Positions 1 through 7,600 of a stretch of 64,000 nt of DNA are shown here, in pieces (the stretch's first letter is position 1; each line of letters begins with the position of its first letter). The stretch covers positions 397,593-461,592 of the forward strand of contig NW_005434640.1 of the NCBI RefSeq assembly GCF_000315625.1, written 5' to 3'. The notes below the pieces were generated by a model, which saw nothing but the letters and a program-made list of their open reading frames with translations, did no database searches and was not told where the DNA came from. The DNA is from Guillardia theta CCMP2712. Its lineage: Eukaryota; Protista; Cryptophyta. Made by a program: the position numbers and the translations under genes.

Positions 1-331
1 GGACAAGGCTCGTCGGGGGGAGGAGGAGGAGCGCGAGGAGGACAAGCGGCGACAAAACCCAAACTGGCGGCGATATAGATGACCTTGACATTCATTGATT
101 CGAAGGAAAACCTCTTCCTCTCTTTGATTCTCTTAGTCTCAATATCCTGTCCCCTCCCACCCTCCCTCGCTCTTCTCACCCCGCGCAGCCCTCCTTTCCC
201 TGGGCCCTCTCCTCCCCTTTCTGTTTCAGCAAAGATCCTCTTGCCATCTGTTCGCCTCCCACCTGACCAAGGAACCATCCCTCCCCCTCCCAGCGCTCAT
301 CCCCCCGCCTTCATCCTCCCTCTGACTCCCT

Positions 332-3300
332 TCAGAGCTCTTCGTGCATCTCGACAGGGAACCTCTTGGCGCCGTGCTCCTCCTTGTGCTCCTTCCCCTC
401 CAGCAGCTGCGCGATCCACTTGAGGAGGAGGCTGAGGGAGAGGGCGAAGAGAAAGAGGATGAAGCAGATAGTCCAGCCCGTGGCGTCCAGCGGTACCGTC
501 CGGCAGGGAGGTATCCCCAGCTGAACGCAGGAGATCTGGAGGAGGAGGAGGACGAGGCCGGAGCCTAGCAAGCGCTTGAGCGACACCTGCTTCAGGTCCC
601 CCGTGTGATAGCTGAGCACCGTCCCCAGCAGCGTCCCAAGCTGGAGGAGCATGAAGGCGTTGAAGATGAGGGAGAAGAGGTAGTTACCGCTCTGTGACTT
701 GCCCTGCCCGTTGGGCATGAGAGGGACGCATGCTCGGCTGCCCTGCTCATCTGCTGTGCAGTCGGTGATCCAGGAGGCTCCTGTGAAGGAGAGGAGGGAG
801 AGGAGGAGGCACTGGCTGCCCGCCTGCACCAGCAGCCTCCCCTTACACTTCCCCGAGAGTAGCGAGACGTTCCTGCGGTAGGGAGACCGCGGGGCCTCGT
901 GGGAGCGAAAGTGGTAAGGGAGGCGATCGACGGATGCGACGCAGAGGAGGGAAAGCACGTCGACAACCACCTTCATCCAGAGCATCTGCTCGGGGAGGAA
1001 GATCTCGACCCCACCGAGAGCTGCCAGGAAGCAGGCGAATGGGGCGACGATGTTGAAGTTGGTGCGGTACTCGAGGTAGGCATGCAGGTTCTGGTGGAAC
1101 CTCCTTCCCCTGTAGAGGACGGAGGCGACGGAGCTCAGGCTATCGTTGAGGCTGATCAGGTCCGCCTCCTGTCTCACCACCTCGTCCCCCTGATGCCTCA
1201 TCGCGATCGTCACGTCCGCCTGCTCCCGCACCCTCAGGTCTTCAAGGTGCTGGCACGAGGCTCCCACCACCTCCCCGCGCTCCTGCAGGCACCTCACAAG
1301 CTCCGCCTTCTCCTCCGAGCTCGCTCCTGTCATGACGCGCACCGATGGAGCGATCGCCGCTCGCTCCTGATCCGACAGCCTCCTCCACTCTGCAGCCGTC
1401 ACGATGCTGCCGTCCTGCAGCAGGGAGCACGTCTCCGCCGCAAGCTTCCCGCCATCCACCTGCTCCCCCGTGAAGACGCGGACCTTGACGCCTGCCTCCT
1501 CGCAGCTCCTCACCGCCTCCTCGATGCCTGACCGCATCTGACTGCGCAGCCCGAGTAGGCCAACGAAGGTCAAGTCGGACGAGAGCAAGCAGCTGTGCTC
1601 GTCGAGTCCGATAAGCCATGAGTCAAGGTCTATCACCCGGTCGTCGTCGTCGTCCTCCTCCTCCTCCTCCTCCAGATCCAGCTCATCTTCCTCCTCCTCC
1701 TCCCGCACGATGGGCTTGACAGAGAAGGCTTCAGGAGAGGGGACGTCCCGGTATGCAAGTGCGATGCTGTTGATCGACGCGCTGTGCAGGGACAGCATGA
1801 CGTTCTTCAGCGCTGACCTCTGCTCTTCCTTCAGTACCTCCCTGCTTCCGTCCGGCAGGAGGTAGAATCTACAGCAGTCCAGCACAATCTCTGCTGCTCC
1901 AGAAGCATAGAACCGTCCTGCCCCCTCCTCTTCTCCTCTCAAGAGGACGCATGCTCTCTTGGAAAACGAGCTGAAAGGCCACACGCGCACGACTCTCCTC
2001 CTGCACTCCTTGCGGACGGCATTGCAGTCGCAGCCAAGTTGCTCGAGCGCGAGCTGAACGCCCGTATCAACTGACCCTGCCGAGGAGCTGGTGCTCCACT
2101 GGACTTTGGACAGCGACTCGGCTCGTGAACCCCTGAGGGGAGAGACTCTCGTGTTGAGCACAAAACCCTCGCAGAGCAGCTGGGATGCGAAGTCGTCCAG
2201 GTGCTCCGAGAGCCAGCATCTTCCGTTCAGGTAGCGGGTGGCACTAGAAGGGGCCCCTGCACCGGCACCGGCAGCAGCAGCACCACCACCAGCCTCTACT
2301 CCCGCTGCTGCTTCTGCTCCTCTTCCTGACTCGCCTCCTGTCCCACATCCGCCAGCTTCTTGAACGTCTGGCACAATTTCCGACTCGCTGCTCAGCTGTG
2401 CCTGCCCAGGATGTTGTCCCTTAGGGAGAAGAGAGTCAAGAGGAGCTGCCGCCTGTTCGAGGACGCAGGACCCATCCGTGTTCCCTTGTTCTACCACCCC
2501 AGGACCCTCCGAGGAAGCCTGAGAACGAGAGGCGAGCGACAGCCTCTGGTGCAGTCTAGACTCTCGATACCCCAGCCCGCAGATATGAGCCATAACGAGC
2601 GTCTTGGGGCCCGAGGTCAGCAGCCCGTTCTTGTCGATGCAGATGCTGGTGATACTCCCCATCACCTCGAGCGACTTCATGCTGCGGATCAGGATCCTCT
2701 CCTTCCTCGACTGCCTGATCGAAGAGGCCAGGAGGGCAGAGAAGATGGCGTTGAGGCCGTGGGGAGCCAGGAGGACGACGATGGCTGCCGATGCCATCAC
2801 CGCCTCCACTAGCAGCCTCAGCTCTGTGGAGGAGAAGTGTAGGATGTGCGGCTCCCAGTCCAGCCCCTCCTCCTTGCACTGCGTCGAGTTGTTCAGCCCC
2901 GGGTACCCTAGAGCACAGTTCTCCACCGGCCCATCGAAGCAAGAGGGAGAAGCAAGCATGATAAGGAAGTATGCTCCCCTCAGGAAAAAGATCACGACTG
3001 CAACCACTCCCCCCACCCGCGCCATCCTGCTCGCAAGGCCCTCGAGCCGCAGCCTAAGAATCGAGTCCCCGGCCAGCTGCCTCCCCAGCCCTTGCCCCAC
3101 CAGGCTCTCCCAGCAGGAGAAGGTCCCCACTGCCGTCACGAGGAAGCGTCCGTGCCCCCCGATCACCGCGCTCCCAGCTGCAAGGAAGGGCGACTTGATC
3201 GGGCACTTGGAGACGCTCTTCCCCTCCTGAGTCTCCTGCGACCTCCTGTGGCTCCCGTCGAACTTCAAGTGGCTCTCGTCCACCAACAAGCTGGACGAAT

Positions 3301-4351
3301 CGATCAGAATGCCGTCGGCCGGCACGATGTCGCCCGCATGTACACAGACGATGTCGCCCACGAGGAGGTCTTGGTGCTTGATCCGCACGTGCTTCTCCTT
3401 CTTGATCACCGTCGTCTCTACATCGCGCCTGCTCCAGTCCAGCATGGAGCACAAGCTCTCCTGGCGCCAGCACTCGTAAGCTGCCTTGAGAAACGCCATG
3501 GCTGCACAGCCGAGGAGGACGTTGACCCCCTCGCTCCACGCGTAGCACTGCTGCGCAGAGCCCTTGGCCTTGCTAAGACGAGCAGACAGCTCTATCTTGT
3601 ACGGCCCTGGCATGTAGATCGGGATGCCGAGCGTCCACAGAGGCCGAGCTGGGCACTTCAGGTCGTAGAGGTCGCCGACTGCCGGGTCGATGTAGACGAA
3701 CCTGCACTCGAGCACCCCAAGAGCGAAGCAGATGATCGAGCTTGCCACCAGCACTACCATCGCATCCTCCATAAACATGTAGAGGAAGAAGCTCGACAAG
3801 CCTGATCCCTCCCCCGGGCGCTGTCGAACCTTGTTGACCCCGTATAGCAGCGCTCTCTTGCCATCGCAGAGGCGGGGCAGCCCCTTCTCGCTCTTCAGCC
3901 AGGACAGGTTTGTGTAGCCGTTCCGCTCGTCCTCCATGAAATCTTTCAGGTTCCTGTCCTCCTCCTTCAACGTGGTTTCAATGCTCGCAGCGATGCCCTG
4001 AACACCGCCCATAACCCGCAGTATCTCAACTTTCCTCATCCTCGAGAGTTCCGCCAGGTCTGTACGCGTTATCCTCCGTCCATTCCCCGTCAGCCTGTAC
4101 CTGTCCTCCAATCCGCCACTCGAGAAGTCAAGAGCGTTCAGGTATCCCCCATCATCGTAGTCGTCGATGAATCTCTGTGCTTCCTCCTCAGTGAAAGAGA
4201 GGTCCACAGAGTCTTCAAAGACGTCGAGGTAACCATTCTCCTGCTCCATCGCTCCTCCTCTTCCTCCGCCATCTCGAGGATCGTACCCATCTCCTCCCTC
4301 CTCCTCCTCCTCCTCCTCCATGAGCCGCCTCCTCAAGTCCTCCCTCCACAT
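332..4351 (-). CDS. P-type ATPase, P2B/PMCA-like, intronless, catalytic motifs degenerate (probable pseudo-pump)
   Basis: Single ORF (first ATG 4351) with PMCA architecture: YGVNK, LLVGDIV..GDIVPADG, VTAVG, SLEVMGSITSICIDKNGLLT (cf. DKTGTLT), PFSS.SKR, SGAAE, IALAYRD, AGVKVRVFTGE, ADLISLNDSL, GRRFHQN, QMLW, SLIFNAFMLLQL; ~10 hydrophobic segments. Confidence 0.9.
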   Translation of the reverse strand: MWREDLRRRLMEEEEEEEGGDGYDPRDGGGRGGAMEQENGYLDVFEDSVDLSFTEEEAQRFIDDYDDGGYLNALDFSSGGLEDRYRLTGNGRRITRTDLAELSRMRKVEILRVMGGVQGIAASIETTLKEEDRNLKDFMEDERNGYTNLSWLKSEKGLPRLCDGKRALLYGVNKVRQRPGEGSGLSSFFLYMFMEDAMVVLVASSIICFALGVLECRFVYIDPAVGDLYDLKCPARPLWTLGIPIYMPGPYKIELSARLSKAKGSAQQCYAWSEGVNVLLGCAAMAFLKAAYECWRQESLCSMLDWSRRDVETTVIKKEKHVRIKHQDLLVGDIVCVHAGDIVPADGILIDSSSLLVDESHLKFDGSHRRSQETQEGKSVSKCPIKSPFLAAGSAVIGGHGRFLVTAVGTFSCWESLVGQGLGRQLAGDSILRLRLEGLASRMARVGGVVAVVIFFLRGAYFLIMLASPSCFDGPVENCALGYPGLNNSTQCKEEGLDWEPHILHFSSTELRLLVEAVMASAAIVVLLAPHGLNAIFSALLASSIRQSRKERILIRSMKSLEVMGSITSICIDKNGLLTSGPKTLVMAHICGLGYRESRLHQRLSLASRSQASSEGPGVVEQGNTDGSCVLEQAAAPLDSLLPKGQHPGQAQLSSESEIVPDVQEAGGCGTGGESGRGAEAAAGVEAGGGAAAAGAGAGAPSSATRYLNGRCWLSEHLDDFASQLLCEGFVLNTRVSPLRGSRAESLSKVQWSTSSSAGSVDTGVQLALEQLGCDCNAVRKECRRRVVRVWPFSSFSKRACVLLRGEEEGAGRFYASGAAEIVLDCCRFYLLPDGSREVLKEEQRSALKNVMLSLHSASINSIALAYRDVPSPEAFSVKPIVREEEEEDELDLEEEEEEDDDDDRVIDLDSWLIGLDEHSCLLSSDLTFVGLLGLRSQMRSGIEEAVRSCEEAGVKVRVFTGEQVDGGKLAAETCSLLQDGSIVTAAEWRRLSDQERAAIAPSVRVMTGASSEEKAELVRCLQERGEVVGASCQHLEDLRVREQADVTIAMRHQGDEVVRQEADLISLNDSLSSVASVLYRGRRFHQNLHAYLEYRTNFNIVAPFACFLAALGGVEIFLPEQMLWMKVVVDVLSLLCVASVDRLPYHFRSHEAPRSPYRRNVSLLSGKCKGRLLVQAGSQCLLLSLLSFTGASWITDCTADEQGSRACVPLMPNGQGKSQSGNYLFSLIFNAFMLLQLGTLLGTVLSYHTGDLKQVSLKRLLGSGLVLLLLQISCVQLGIPPCRTVPLDATGWTICFILFLFALSLSLLLKWIAQLLEGKEHKEEHGAKRFPVEMHEEL

Positions 4352-4654
4352 CCTTGCGACATCCCGACAAGCCTCACGGTACCCCACCCCACCCCACTCA
4401 TGTCATTGTACCCCTACCCACCTCCATTTTTAAGTACCGGTATGTTCATATTTTAAATGACCCCCTTGTGGTAGATGCTGAAACAACGAGGCCATATAAT
4501 AACCCCTACAAATGGCTGCTGACTACCCCACGTACCCCTGATTTCACCTAATAGTACCCCCTTTCCAGGCAGACCCCTTGCAAACATCCGGAGTGCTCCT
4601 TGTTGGGTATGTGGGTGATGAGATGTCGGGCTGTATGAGGGGCTCAAGGGCGAC

Positions 4655-7600
4655 ATGAGATGGCGGTCTGGGTGGTGGCTGGCGATGTTGGTGGCGATGG
4701 TGAGGATGGAGGCAGATGTCAGGTAGGAGGAGGAGGAGGAGGAGGAGGAGGAGGAGGAGGAGGAGGAGGAGGAGGAGGAGGAGGAGGAGGAGGAGGAGGA
4801 GGAGAAGGAGGAGGAGGAGGAGGAGGAGGAGGAGGAGGAGGAGGAGGATGATAAAGGGCAGGGGGAAGCTTTATCTCAGAATCTCAACCTCCTCAAGCTC
4901 GGTGACTGCAACAATTTACTGGTTTCGTCCTCTGANNNNNNNNNNNNNNNNNNNNNNNNNNNNNNNNNNNNNNNNNNNNNNNNNNNNNNNNNNNNNNNNN
5001 NNNNNNNNNNNNNNNNNNNNNNNNNNNNNNNNNNNGGAGGAGGAGGAGGAGGAGGAGGAGGAGGAGGTAGTGGTGGTAGGGTAGTGGAGGAGGTAGTGGT
5101 GGTGATAATTGAGGTGATGATGGTGATGATGTAGGTGGAAGAGAAGGTTTCAAAGGAGCTTGATGTAGTCGTGGCAGGGTAGAGGAGGTGGTGGTGGTAG
5201 AAGCGAGGACAGGGCTAGGAACAGGGATGGAGAGGACGAGGACGAGGACGAGGACGAAGATCAGATCGAAGAGGACGAAAAGGATAGCCATTGCTGGAGG
5301 CAGAGGCAGAGGTAGAGACGGTGAATGAGAAAAGTTAGTGGTGGCGGTGATGGAAATCAATGATATGTTGGTAATTGGGGAGGGAAAGGCAGACCAAGTG
5401 AGGAAAGGAACTCTAGGGCTCTTACAAGCACTGACGACAACTCAGCATGTGTGCGTATGCGGAGCTGCAGCAGTCTCCTCACTTCAGTTTCCTTCCGAAG
5501 CTTCACGTCGCTGGGCCAAGCAAGCACGTAGCGAGACCTTCGAACACGGAGAGCTCTAGCAGGTTCAGCTGGCCTCGTGCTCGTCCCTTGCTAGAAGCTA
5601 AGAGGCTGTCGAACTGCAGGAACCCCTGGACGCTGCCTTCTTCCTCCCTCCTCTCCCTACACCATCTCCTCTGCTCATGGAGAGATAGCCCACAGACAAG
5701 GTGGTGAAGCATGCTCCTGTGCCCTGCCTGCTCCTCCTCACTCCTGGCCTGCAACAGCGCCTGGGGTGTCATGCTGGTGGCATGCACCGCTGGCGTTTGG
5801 ACTTCAAAGGGACATCGACTCCTCTCACCCTTCCTCCCCATCCGACTCCACGGGAGGAGGAGGAGACTGTACACGGGGAGAGCGGTGCCTTACGACTCGG
5901 GGAATGTGAGGAGGGAAAATGTTGAGAGTTGCTGAGGCCTGATGCTCTTGCAGGAGGAGAGGGCCCAGTATGAGAGCTTGCCCTCTGTTGCTACTTGGAA
6001 TCAGCCGTCCAACATGCTACAGGTGTTGCATCTCTCCTACCCTGCTAGTCGTTGTTTTTCCATGTAATGCTCCTCTCTCCTCTCTCCTCCCCTTCTCCTC
6101 TCTCCTCCTCCCCTCTCCCTCCTCTCTCCTTCACTGCGCTCGTAGGGCCGAAAGCTTGAGCTCCTACTTGAAGCTACTCTTCCTGCCATGGATGGTCCAG
6201 AGACTTTCTACGGCCTGGGATGCAACGAGACCGAGTTTAAGCTCTTTCTTGATTATATCGCAGGAAGAAATTTGTAGGCTACTTCTTCCAGCCTCCTCCT
6301 CCTCTCCCTCTCCCTCTCCCTCTCCCTCCTCCTCCTCCTCCTCTCCCTTGTCGTGCCCTTAGGCACTCCTCATCTCCTCATCCCTCTTTGTCCTCGTCCC
6401 CGCAACCCTACATCTCCACCTCTTTGTGCTTGTTCTCTGCTTCTTTACCTCTATCCCCATTCCTCTTTCCTCGCCATCCTCCTGTCCTCCATCCTGAGTT
6501 TCTCACGGCATATCTTGATCGCAATCAAACGTTGCAGGACAGAAGAGCAAGTTAACATCTCGAGCAAGTACGTCGACACCGGCGACGACAACGTGCGATC
6601 GATGCTGCGAATGCACTGGAACAGTTGTCACCTCCTGCTCAAGAACAAGGTAGAACGCTTGTCCCAACCGTCTGATGATGATGATGATGATGATGATGAT
6701 GCCCATTCTTCTCCTCCTCCTCCTGTGGGGTTTCCCTGCTTATCATCCTCACTTACATCCTCGTCATCGCCATCGTCATCGCCTGTGCCGTTGCCATTCT
6801 GCTGATGGGACGATTTGCTTCAGAGTTCCAAGAATGTCATGGCAGCCGATACACGGCTGGTTGCGGAAGTCAAAGGTTACCTTAAGGTTTGGCGAGGGAT
6901 GGCGAGGAGGAGGAGAGGGAGGAGGGAGGAGGAGAGGGAGGAGGGAGGAGGAGAGGGAAGAGGAGAGGGCGGAGGGTGAGAGAGGGAAGGTGGAAGTGAA
7001 CTAACGCGCCTTGCAGTTGATGGAATCGTTCGAGACGGAACCGATGCGAGGTCTGACTCCCCTACCCTTTCATGTTCACGTGGTGCGTTTGCCCTGATTC
7101 CTTTCAGGATCGGCTCTACTCCAGTGGCTTCAAGAACAATGCGGAGAATCGCTGATACAGGTAGCAGAGGAGGGATAGAGAGATAAGAGGAGGAGGAAGG
7201 AGGAAGGAGATCTGACTGGGATCGATCAGAGATGCCAAGCAGGCAGCAACTTGTCACTGGAAGAAACTCAAAGCGCCCTCAAAGAACTTCTGAATTGGTG
7301 AAGGGGAAGAGAAGCCGGGGGGGTTGTGAGGTTGGAGCAGGTTTAAGAAAGAGTTTCCCTACTACGACCAGGGTTGCTTTCACTGCGGCAACAAGGAGGG
7401 TCAAAGACTTGGTGAGAGGAGGAGGAGGAGGAGGAGGAGGAGAGAAGCAAAGAGGAGGGGGGTTGTGATGGCTGTCAAGGTTCGGTGAAGGCGAGCGAGC
7501 AAGAAGAAGAATTTCTCGCACGGCGGAGTGAAATCCTCTTTTGCCCCAGCTGCTCCAGGTGATGTTTCGTTCTGTGATTTCAGCTCTCCGACGCTCCCAC

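Follow-up and report, generated by a model that had tools for sequence, protein, structure and literature searches.

P-type ATPases are defined and inventoried by the DKTGT motif and its companion motifs, and the Asp of DKTGT is phosphorylated in every P-type ATPase. Published inventories drop sequences without DKTGT (PMC10763278), so that proteins in which these motifs have been rewritten are filtered out. In the literature on pseudo or non-catalytic P-type ATPases we found only the cyclase-fused P4-like domains of apicomplexans and no description of a stand-alone P2B pseudo-pump, a possibility that is not raised in a recent broad review of the superfamily either. In the P4-ATPase-like domain of the Plasmodium guanylyl cyclase beta most signature residues are unidentifiable, and the domain is regarded as degenerated and non-catalytic (PMC6592433). 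Another useful comparison is with active pumps, where built-in positive side chains at the canonical ion site are an established principle (Arg655/Asp684 in AHA2, a Lys in transmembrane helix 5 of P1B-2, P3A and P4A pumps, a His in P1B-4 pumps and Lys586 in KdpB; PMC10654040). Here we analyze a PMCA-like gene near one end of a 64,000-nucleotide stretch of the Guillardia theta CCMP2712 genome (contig NW_005434640.1, positions 397,593 to 461,592; hereafter the window), whose 1339-residue product keeps the architecture of a P2B pump and has almost every catalytic and ion-binding motif rewritten.

The likeness of this protein to PMCA1-4 and ACA8 extends to the best sequence, family-model (TIGR01517) and structural matches, to the ten helices and the actuator (A), nucleotide-binding (N) and phosphorylation (P) domains, and to a single retained Asp in helix M6, as at the one-Ca2+ site of PMCA. 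It differs from the PMCA and ACA pumps in falling below the equivalog cut-off of their family model, in the alteration of TGES, of the KGAxE Lys, of DPxR, of the Thr residues of DKTGT and of GDGxND, in His and Lys at Ca2+-ligand positions, in a new Arg in M5, and in having large Cys-rich outer loops and two low-complexity insertions. With the Plasmodium cyclase it shares a degenerate and seemingly non-catalytic P-type scaffold, but there the module is of the P4 (flippase) type, is fused to a cyclase and occurs in alveolates, whereas the window protein derives from the P2B type, stands alone with no enzyme fused to it and has a conserved outer domain of its own. As in the counter-ion pumps, a positive side chain lies near the canonical site opposite an acidic residue, here Lys1127 and Arg1096 against Asp1131. 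Those pumps, however, keep the full catalytic machinery and the charge completes their cycle; the machinery of the window protein appears to be dismantled, and the positive charge would thus be a permanent occupant. On balance we favor the reading that the gene is an expressed and maintained stand-alone P2B derivative in which positive side chains of the protein itself fill the ion site and the conserved outer domain is the functional part, and we think it very probable from its residues that the protein does not pump Ca2+.

The open reading frame (ORF) listing of the window gives a minus-strand frame at 332..4387 with a GTG start and 1351 residues; we use the first in-frame ATG (Table 1). An earlier note on this DNA had described an uninterrupted frame of about 1340 codons with the complete P2B scaffold, and this description holds, with 1339 codons, three Pfam domains and PMCA and ACA proteins as top matches. 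The Pfam matches are PF00122 (E1-E2_ATPase, 48.1 bits against a cut-off of 28.1), PF13246 (Cation_ATPase, the N domain, 24.4 against 21.7) and PF00689 (Cation_ATPase_C, 33.5 against 27.3). The HAD Hydrolase model PF00702, which corresponds to the phosphorylation domain of working pumps, has no match in the protein at E <= 0.1. Among the NCBIfam models the general P-type model TIGR01494 is passed (111.8 bits against 62.3), and the top-scoring model is the PMCA-type TIGR01517, yet its 293.5 bits do not reach the equivalog cut-off of 507.05. In a phmmer search against the PDB the nearest solved structures are ACA8 (8.7e-66) and PMCA1 and PMCA2 (about 1e-57), with SERCA and SPCA far weaker at about 1e-28 to 1e-30. 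P2B (PMCA/ACA) is therefore the closest P-type family by sequence, and the same is found by structure and by tree position. Pfam gave no match to PF12515 or another terminal domain, which is weak evidence of absence since calmodulin-binding autoinhibitory regions are short and poorly modelled. The NCBI gene model at this locus (P0042) is a 286-residue fragment of the 1339-residue frame, at about 1238-2092 of the window. The gene is thus under-called in the deposited annotation and would be missed by name-based database searches. An exact look-up of the translation from the GTG found no entry in the protein collection.

The substitutions that the earlier note had read in this protein (DKNGL with the Asp kept, SGAAE, TGEQ, SCQHLED, PHGL and WMKVVVD) are all present in the sequence and in our alignments. 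To these we add the loss of DPxR (now SQMR), of the Arg equivalent to SERCA R560 (now Asn861) and of the second Gln of the M5 QFQ (now Arg1096). The DKTGT signature of P-type enzymes is absent as such, and neither a TGES-type motif with its conserved Glu nor the standard TGD and GDGxND signatures are found. The loss of TGES is certain, although its counterpart depends on the aligner: MAFFT L-INS-i pairs LTGES with LKFDG, as the earlier note had it, and HMMER pairs TGES with TQEG after an 11-residue insertion. Since the two aligners disagree and the segment varies among relatives, we do not claim a retained catalytic Glu for the A domain. At the ion site, the side chains that bind Ca2+ in PMCA (the M4 Glu and the M6 Asn and Asp, an assignment that we take from established PMCA and SERCA knowledge) align with His531, Lys1127 and Asp1131, so that the proposed replacement of ligands by His and Lys stands.

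Whether such changes are accidents of one gene can be judged from its relatives, which were sought by an exhaustive HMMER search of 1.8 billion representative proteins. The upper tier of this search consists of P0041 (1387 residues, 40% identity, E 6e-182), P0043 (E 2e-166), P0044 (full-length form P0192, 1253 residues), P0055, P0091 (longer form P0210) and P0045 (E 1e-103), and ordinary P2B pumps start only at about 1e-68. Word-index protein searches did not recover the clade, unlike the exhaustive search, and returned only canonical pumps at 23-29% identity; a look-alike search of the ESM Atlas gave generic cation-ATPase clusters only. A maximum-likelihood tree of 46 proteins joins the window protein and five relatives in a single group (Shimodaira-Hasegawa-like approximate likelihood ratio test, SH-aLRT, 100) inside the P2B radiation, on a stem of 1.94 substitutions per site. 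Its members were recovered from an MMETSP transcriptome, from metagenomes of JGI and ENA and from Logan assemblies. With at least five lineages, several of them known only from fragments or split gene models, this is a small clade, and its derived states were read from the alignments together with further exons in contigs L011 and L008.

The states at the rewritten positions are largely shared. The M4 PEGL is PHGL in four lineages and PNGL in one, the second Gln of the M5 QFQ is Arg in five of five, and the M6 Ca2+-ligand Asn is Lys in every one of the five, followed by a retained Asp in all sequences that are readable there. DKTGT has become DKNG, DKNG, DKNS, EKNS and EKQG across the five lineages, so that two of them have Glu in place of the phospho-acceptor Asp. 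The KGAxE Lys is Ser, Ala, Ser, Thr or Met, the R560-equivalent Arg is Asn, Asn, Asn, Thr or His, and DPxR is lost and variable. TGD reads TGE in four lineages and SGS in one, TGDGTND follows the pattern x-C-(Q/D/R)-x-x-E-D, and the Lys of SPxDK is kept. None of the clade proteins has a PF00702 match, which essentially all canonical matches have. The window protein keeps every clade-invariant residue, eight loop Cys included. Relatives with the same substitutions, which the earlier note had proposed to look for among cryptophytes, thus exist in transcriptomes of marine protists and in environmental assemblies. As read from these alignments, the rewriting of the motifs characterises a whole monophyletic clade, with at least five lineages that diverged deeply, and is not peculiar to the window gene. 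The group would on this evidence be a pseudoenzyme family derived from P2B pumps.

The gene structures of the relatives vary. An intron of about 1.4 kb lies at 1680-3057 of L007, the relatives on L008 and L009 are split over several exons, and in the P0043 gene a frame change across a short interruption (about 3314-3353 of L011) was read through by the gene caller. Given these introns and frame interruptions, several of the database proteins of the clade are truncated gene models. P0041, the closest full-length relative, is an intronless frame of 1387 codons on a eukaryotic 23-kb JGI contig (L001), where it is flanked by an RRM-domain gene and by ankyrin and ARM-repeat genes; there is no apparent synteny with the window (L001, L002).

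One alternative is that the protein is still an ATP-driven pump with an unusual chemistry, for example for protons or another substrate, in which the M5 Arg and M6 Lys would serve the M6 Asp as built-in counter-ions, in the manner of Asp684 and Arg655 in the P3A pumps. The window protein does keep Asp573, Lys574, the TGE, Lys1015 and the last Asp of GDGxND. Plant and fungal H+-ATPases operate with an Asp in M6 that is paired with an Arg in M5, Lys and His counter-ions occur in active pumps (PMC10654040), and the nucleotide-site Lys is likewise missing from active P1B and P6 pumps. What makes this reading improbable to us is the remainder of the cycle. TGES, needed by all pumps for dephosphorylation, is absent and its segment is unconserved; the Thr beside the phosphorylation site has become Asn or Gln; and the R560-equivalent Arg and DPxR are gone. 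The Mg2+-site Asp equivalent to SERCA D703 is Gln or Arg in two lineages, and two of the five lineages carry a Glu phospho-acceptor in an otherwise identical architecture. The missing PF00702 match, the score of 293 against 507 for the PMCA equivalog and the relaxed conservation of the P domain point the same way.

The most informative of the upper-tier matches is P0045 (identical in length to P0194; found as an MMETSP transcript and on a JGI contig). It matches the Pfam models Hydrolase and Cation_ATPase_N and retains TGES, PEGL, DKTGTLT, KGASE, DPLR, TGDN, GDGTND and WVNLVMD, and it is presumably, to judge from these motifs, a working pump. It also has all three loop insertions of the clade, with the same Cys positions and spacing and the same flanks (CPxxxLW, CFD, DCT and GNY), and in no other canonical match are these outer-loop Cys features correctly placed. 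The other 35 P2B pumps of the tree form a group with 86% support that includes neither P0045 nor the degenerate clade, and a union of these two is not rejected by the approximately unbiased (AU) test (log-likelihood difference 2.2, p = 0.45). P0045 is thus likely, on its loops and placement, to be the active sister of the degenerate clade. These same two observations suggest that the Cys-rich outer domain most likely predates the loss of catalysis and arose in a working pump. The catalytic cycle was then most likely taken apart in a single later episode, on the stem lineage of the clade, as far as the sequences can tell.

The Cys-rich insertions that the earlier note had noticed in the extracytoplasmic loops are borne out, with three, three and two Cys in the three loops. 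The N-x-T sequon of the second outer loop is present in most clade members, and together with the loop Cys it is compatible with a luminal or extracellular, glycosylated and disulfide-bonded module. The distribution of conservation also points to these loops. In canonical pumps the phosphorylation domain and M4-M6 are the most conserved parts (mean pairwise identity 0.57-0.63) and the outer loops the least (0.10-0.21, with 0.10-0.12 for loops 2 and 4). In the clade this order is reversed: outer loop 4 reaches 0.49 and loop 2 reaches 0.48, next to 0.48 for the region around the altered phosphorylation motif and 0.45 for the M2 stalk, M4 and M5-M6 are down to 0.35-0.40, and the P domain with M4-M6 spans 0.35-0.48 overall. 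This shift of constraint to the outer loops favors a receptor or scaffold type of role.

An AlphaFold2 model of residues 116-1315, built from an 88-sequence alignment, has a mean pLDDT (predicted local distance difference test) of 80 and a pTM (predicted template modelling score) of 0.79. Its low-confidence parts are the two low-complexity insertions and portions of outer loops 1 and 2. The top Foldseek matches are mouse PMCA-neuroplastin in E1 states and human PMCA1, with E down to 3e-50 and target-normalised template modelling (TM) scores of 0.74-0.77, and E2 states score 0.52-0.56; the E1-like pose may be an effect of the predictor. As modelled, the whole pump architecture of ten helices and A, N and P domains is retained. 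The modelling that the earlier note had proposed therefore gives a full pump scaffold that folds, closest to PMCA. A scaffold whose gates no longer alternate could also leak ions or protons, as Na,K-ATPase does with both of its gates kept open by palytoxin. Such a passive conductance would be in keeping with the complete and confidently modelled membrane domain, and with ion-pathway residues that are rewritten rather than randomised and are conserved across the clade. That the fold can conduct is seen in the palytoxin-opened Na,K-ATPase channel (9vj0), which is among the structural matches. We nevertheless hold a leak to be unlikely, because two or three positive side chains at the narrowest point of the pathway would oppose cations, the data give no sign of an open pore, and the highest conservation is in the outer loops and not in the pathway helices.

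Selection could be measured on two close pairs within the clade. For the first, with 490 codons, the ratio of nonsynonymous to synonymous rates (dN/dS) is 0.28-0.37 (p = 8e-5 against neutrality). The second covers 431 codons, the degenerate phosphorylation and nucleotide domains among them, and has a ratio of 0.16-0.17 (p = 9e-8). A value near 1, which the earlier note had named as the mark of a decaying copy, is thus not what the relatives have. Loss of catalytic residues together with purifying selection across lineages, as measured on these relatives, is what would be expected of a pseudoenzyme. Two metagenome scans yielded no relatives, and with that no close orthologue of the window gene.

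For expression, 15 public runs from six studies contain the whole or part of the gene stretch. Contigs of three runs, one from each of three studies, are collinear with the window at 185/256-1633 and 1711-4285 with 0 mismatches, gaps or joints, and they break solely at an internal GAG-type repeat. Another GAG repeat, at 4286-4329, conceals the start codon in these data. The upstream intergenic bin at 4397-4553 has zero depth in these runs, and a separate, much deeper contig of the neighbouring gene begins at 4647 (4647-4700 and beyond), at a depth of about 300 against about 25 for the gene studied here. Contigs that end at the gene borders and leave the spacer uncovered resemble an unspliced mRNA of modest abundance, whereas a genomic assembly would cross the spacer. 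Relatives occur in MMETSP transcriptomes. The gene is transcribed, insofar as the covering runs are guessed correctly to be RNA, and the expression that the earlier note had wanted checked is thus seen as contigs from three studies bounded by the gene. In the raw RNA run, six reads with two start points join window positions 557 and 2327 on opposite strands, within GAG/CTC-rich low-complexity coding sequence, and this joint is most likely a mapping artefact.

These data also bear on the possibility of a decaying pseudogene, or a recent retro-pseudogene, with a frame that has stayed open by chance. The window gene lacks introns that some relatives' lineages have, its catalytic substitutions are many, the public model is only a 286-residue fragment and its read depth is below that of neighbouring genes, all of which could be expected of a dying copy. 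On the other hand, the substitutions are common to, and conserved in, at least five lineages that lie far apart and have intact frames, the relatives are under the purifying selection described above, and 1339 stop-free codons would arise by chance with a probability of about 4e-20 at the local composition (61% G+C). Moreover, the clade-invariant residues, loop Cys among them, are all retained, transcript-like coverage comes from three studies, and neither a poly(A) tail nor a target-site duplication is seen, so that decay strikes us as extremely unlikely. The suggestion of the earlier note that the gene was possibly born as a retrocopy also finds no support here. No poly(A) remnant or A-run follows the stop at the locus, no flanking direct repeats or target-site duplication were found apart from GAG-type low complexity (a parent gene was not searched for), and the closest full-length relative, P0041, is intronless too. 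A retrocopy origin is also unnecessary, as the degenerate state is older than the window lineage. The main proposal of that note, a protein maintained for a non-pumping role, is strengthened by the clade-wide substitutions, the purifying selection in the close pairs and the collinear transcript-like contigs.

Taken together, rewritten sites that are common to a clade of protists speak for a maintained pseudo-pump and not for a decaying gene. In the mechanism that we propose, Lys1127 and Arg1096, with His531, would permanently occupy the canonical ion pocket, paired with Asp1131. The membrane domain would then be frozen in one conformation that resembles the cation-bound state without an ion. 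With the cycle gone, the selected function would have moved to the disulfide-rich outer domain formed by the M1-M2, M3-M4 and M7-M8 loops, which could be a binding or receptor module or a scaffold. The protein may act beside the intact sister pump that bears the same outer loops, or may regulate it.

Several observations weigh against this interpretation. The loss of activity is read from the residues, and Asp573, the SPxDK Lys1015, the TGE and the last Asp of GDGxND are all kept in the window protein, so that some nucleotide or phosphate chemistry is possible. The tree carries a long-branch warning, and a stem as long as that of the clade is prone to long-branch artefacts. The tree alone does not fix P0045 as the sister, and the AU test does no more than not reject that position. 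Given that no close orthologue was found, the dN/dS values come from relatives and not from the window copy. The RNA nature of the covering runs is only guessed, and the only certain raw RNA run (X16) contributed 8 reads from a 6% sample, which is uninformative. Finally, the outer loops are modelled at low to moderate confidence.

The retained Asp573 also allows a more speculative possibility, in which the family is a transmembrane switch or receptor derived from a P-type ATPase, with a phospho-latch between the headpiece and the outer domain. In the lineages with Asp573 the protein would still be phosphorylated from ATP, and without TGES it could not dephosphorylate itself and would act as a slow conformational latch. 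Through this latch the cytoplasmic headpiece and the disulfide-rich outer domain would be coupled, in one direction or the other, and in the two Glu lineages the latch would be hard-wired in a phospho-mimic state. We rate this a long shot. If true, the E1/E2 machinery would here serve for signalling, with an ion site self-occupied by Lys and Arg.

If the pseudo-pump reading is right, a conserved and expressed PMCA derivative with a dismantled cycle would mean that the pump scaffold is reusable for purposes other than pumping. The protein could serve as a natural frozen-state model for the coupling of the ion site to the headpiece, and the active sister with the same outer loops would make a ready comparison pair. 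Different degenerate motifs are seen in two fungal P2B paralogues, P0179 from Berkeleyomyces rouxiae and P0190 from Lasiosphaeria ovina (named NCA-3). Their phospho-Asp is replaced by Gly (CTGKSGSLT and CTGKTSILT), PEGL has become PSSL, and GDGxND has become GSSLND or GGNVDD; P0179 sits on a long branch adjoining a canonical fungal pump. From these sequences catalytic loss in P2B pumps seems to have occurred independently more than once, which hints that pseudo-pumps may be recurrent and overlooked.

Table 1. Coordinates in the window of the pseudo-pump gene, its domains, its altered motifs and its insertions.
Feature	Window position	Strand	Basis or remark
PMCA-like pseudo-pump coding sequence, 1339 residues + stop (332-334)	332..4351	-	First in-frame ATG at 4351; frame open up to GTG at 4387
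3' untranslated region	185..331	-	Transcript-like contigs end at 185-256; no poly(A) remnant in genome
Outer loop 1 (M1-M2), residues 216-272: insertion, 3 Cys (C..CPxxPLW..C.AW)	3536..3706	-	Common to clade and P0045
Actuator (A) domain, Pfam E1-E2_ATPase, residues 311-457	2981..3421	-	Pfam
Degenerate DES..TGES segment, residues 358-382	3206..3280	-	TGES lost; clade-specific acidic insertion, varying among members
Outer loop 2 (M3-M4), residues 471-499: CFD..C..GYPGLNNST.C..G..W, 3 Cys, N-x-T sequon	2855..2941	-	Among the most conserved of the clade
M4 PHGL for PEGL, residues 530-533: Ca2+-ligand Glu to His531	2753..2764	-	Alignments
DKNGLLT for DKTGTLT, residues 573-579: Asp573 kept	2615..2635	-	Alignments
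Low-complexity N-domain insertion, residues 601-712	2216..2551	-	Predicted disordered; kept in transcript contigs
SGAAE for KGAxE, residues 817-821: nucleotide-site Lys lost	1889..1903	-	Alignments
SINSIALAYRD, residues 859-869: SERCA R560-equivalent Arg to Asn861	1745..1777	-	Alignments
Acidic insertion, residues 877-924	1580..1723	-	Partly GAG-type repeat; short-read assemblies break at 1634-1710
P-domain segment, residues 937-964: SQMR (937-940) for DPxR, TGEQ (961-964) for TGDN	1460..1543	-	Alignments
SCQHLED for TGDGTND, residues 1032-1038: SERCA D703 Mg2+-site Asp to Gln, Asn to Glu, last Asp kept	1238..1258	-	
M5 YLEYRTNFN, residues 1092-1100: second Gln of QFQ to Arg1096, clade-wide	1052..1078	-	
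C-terminal membrane domain M5-M10, Pfam Cation_ATPase_C, residues 1117-1313	413..1003	-	Pfam, model
M6 WMKVVVD, residues 1125-1131: Ca2+-ligand Asn to Lys1127, Asp1131 kept	959..979	-	
Outer loop 4 (M7-M8), residues 1195-1226: DCT..C.P..PNGQG..GNYL, 2 Cys	674..769	-	Most conserved segment of the clade

The pseudo-pump gene and the next gene stand head to head, about 300 nucleotides apart. A perfect GAG/CCT-type trinucleotide repeat of about 140 nucleotides lies at 4716-4860 of the window, near a 91-nucleotide run of N (an assembly gap) at 4945-5035. The long poly-Arg and poly-Glu ORFs called in the spacer are artefacts of this repeat.

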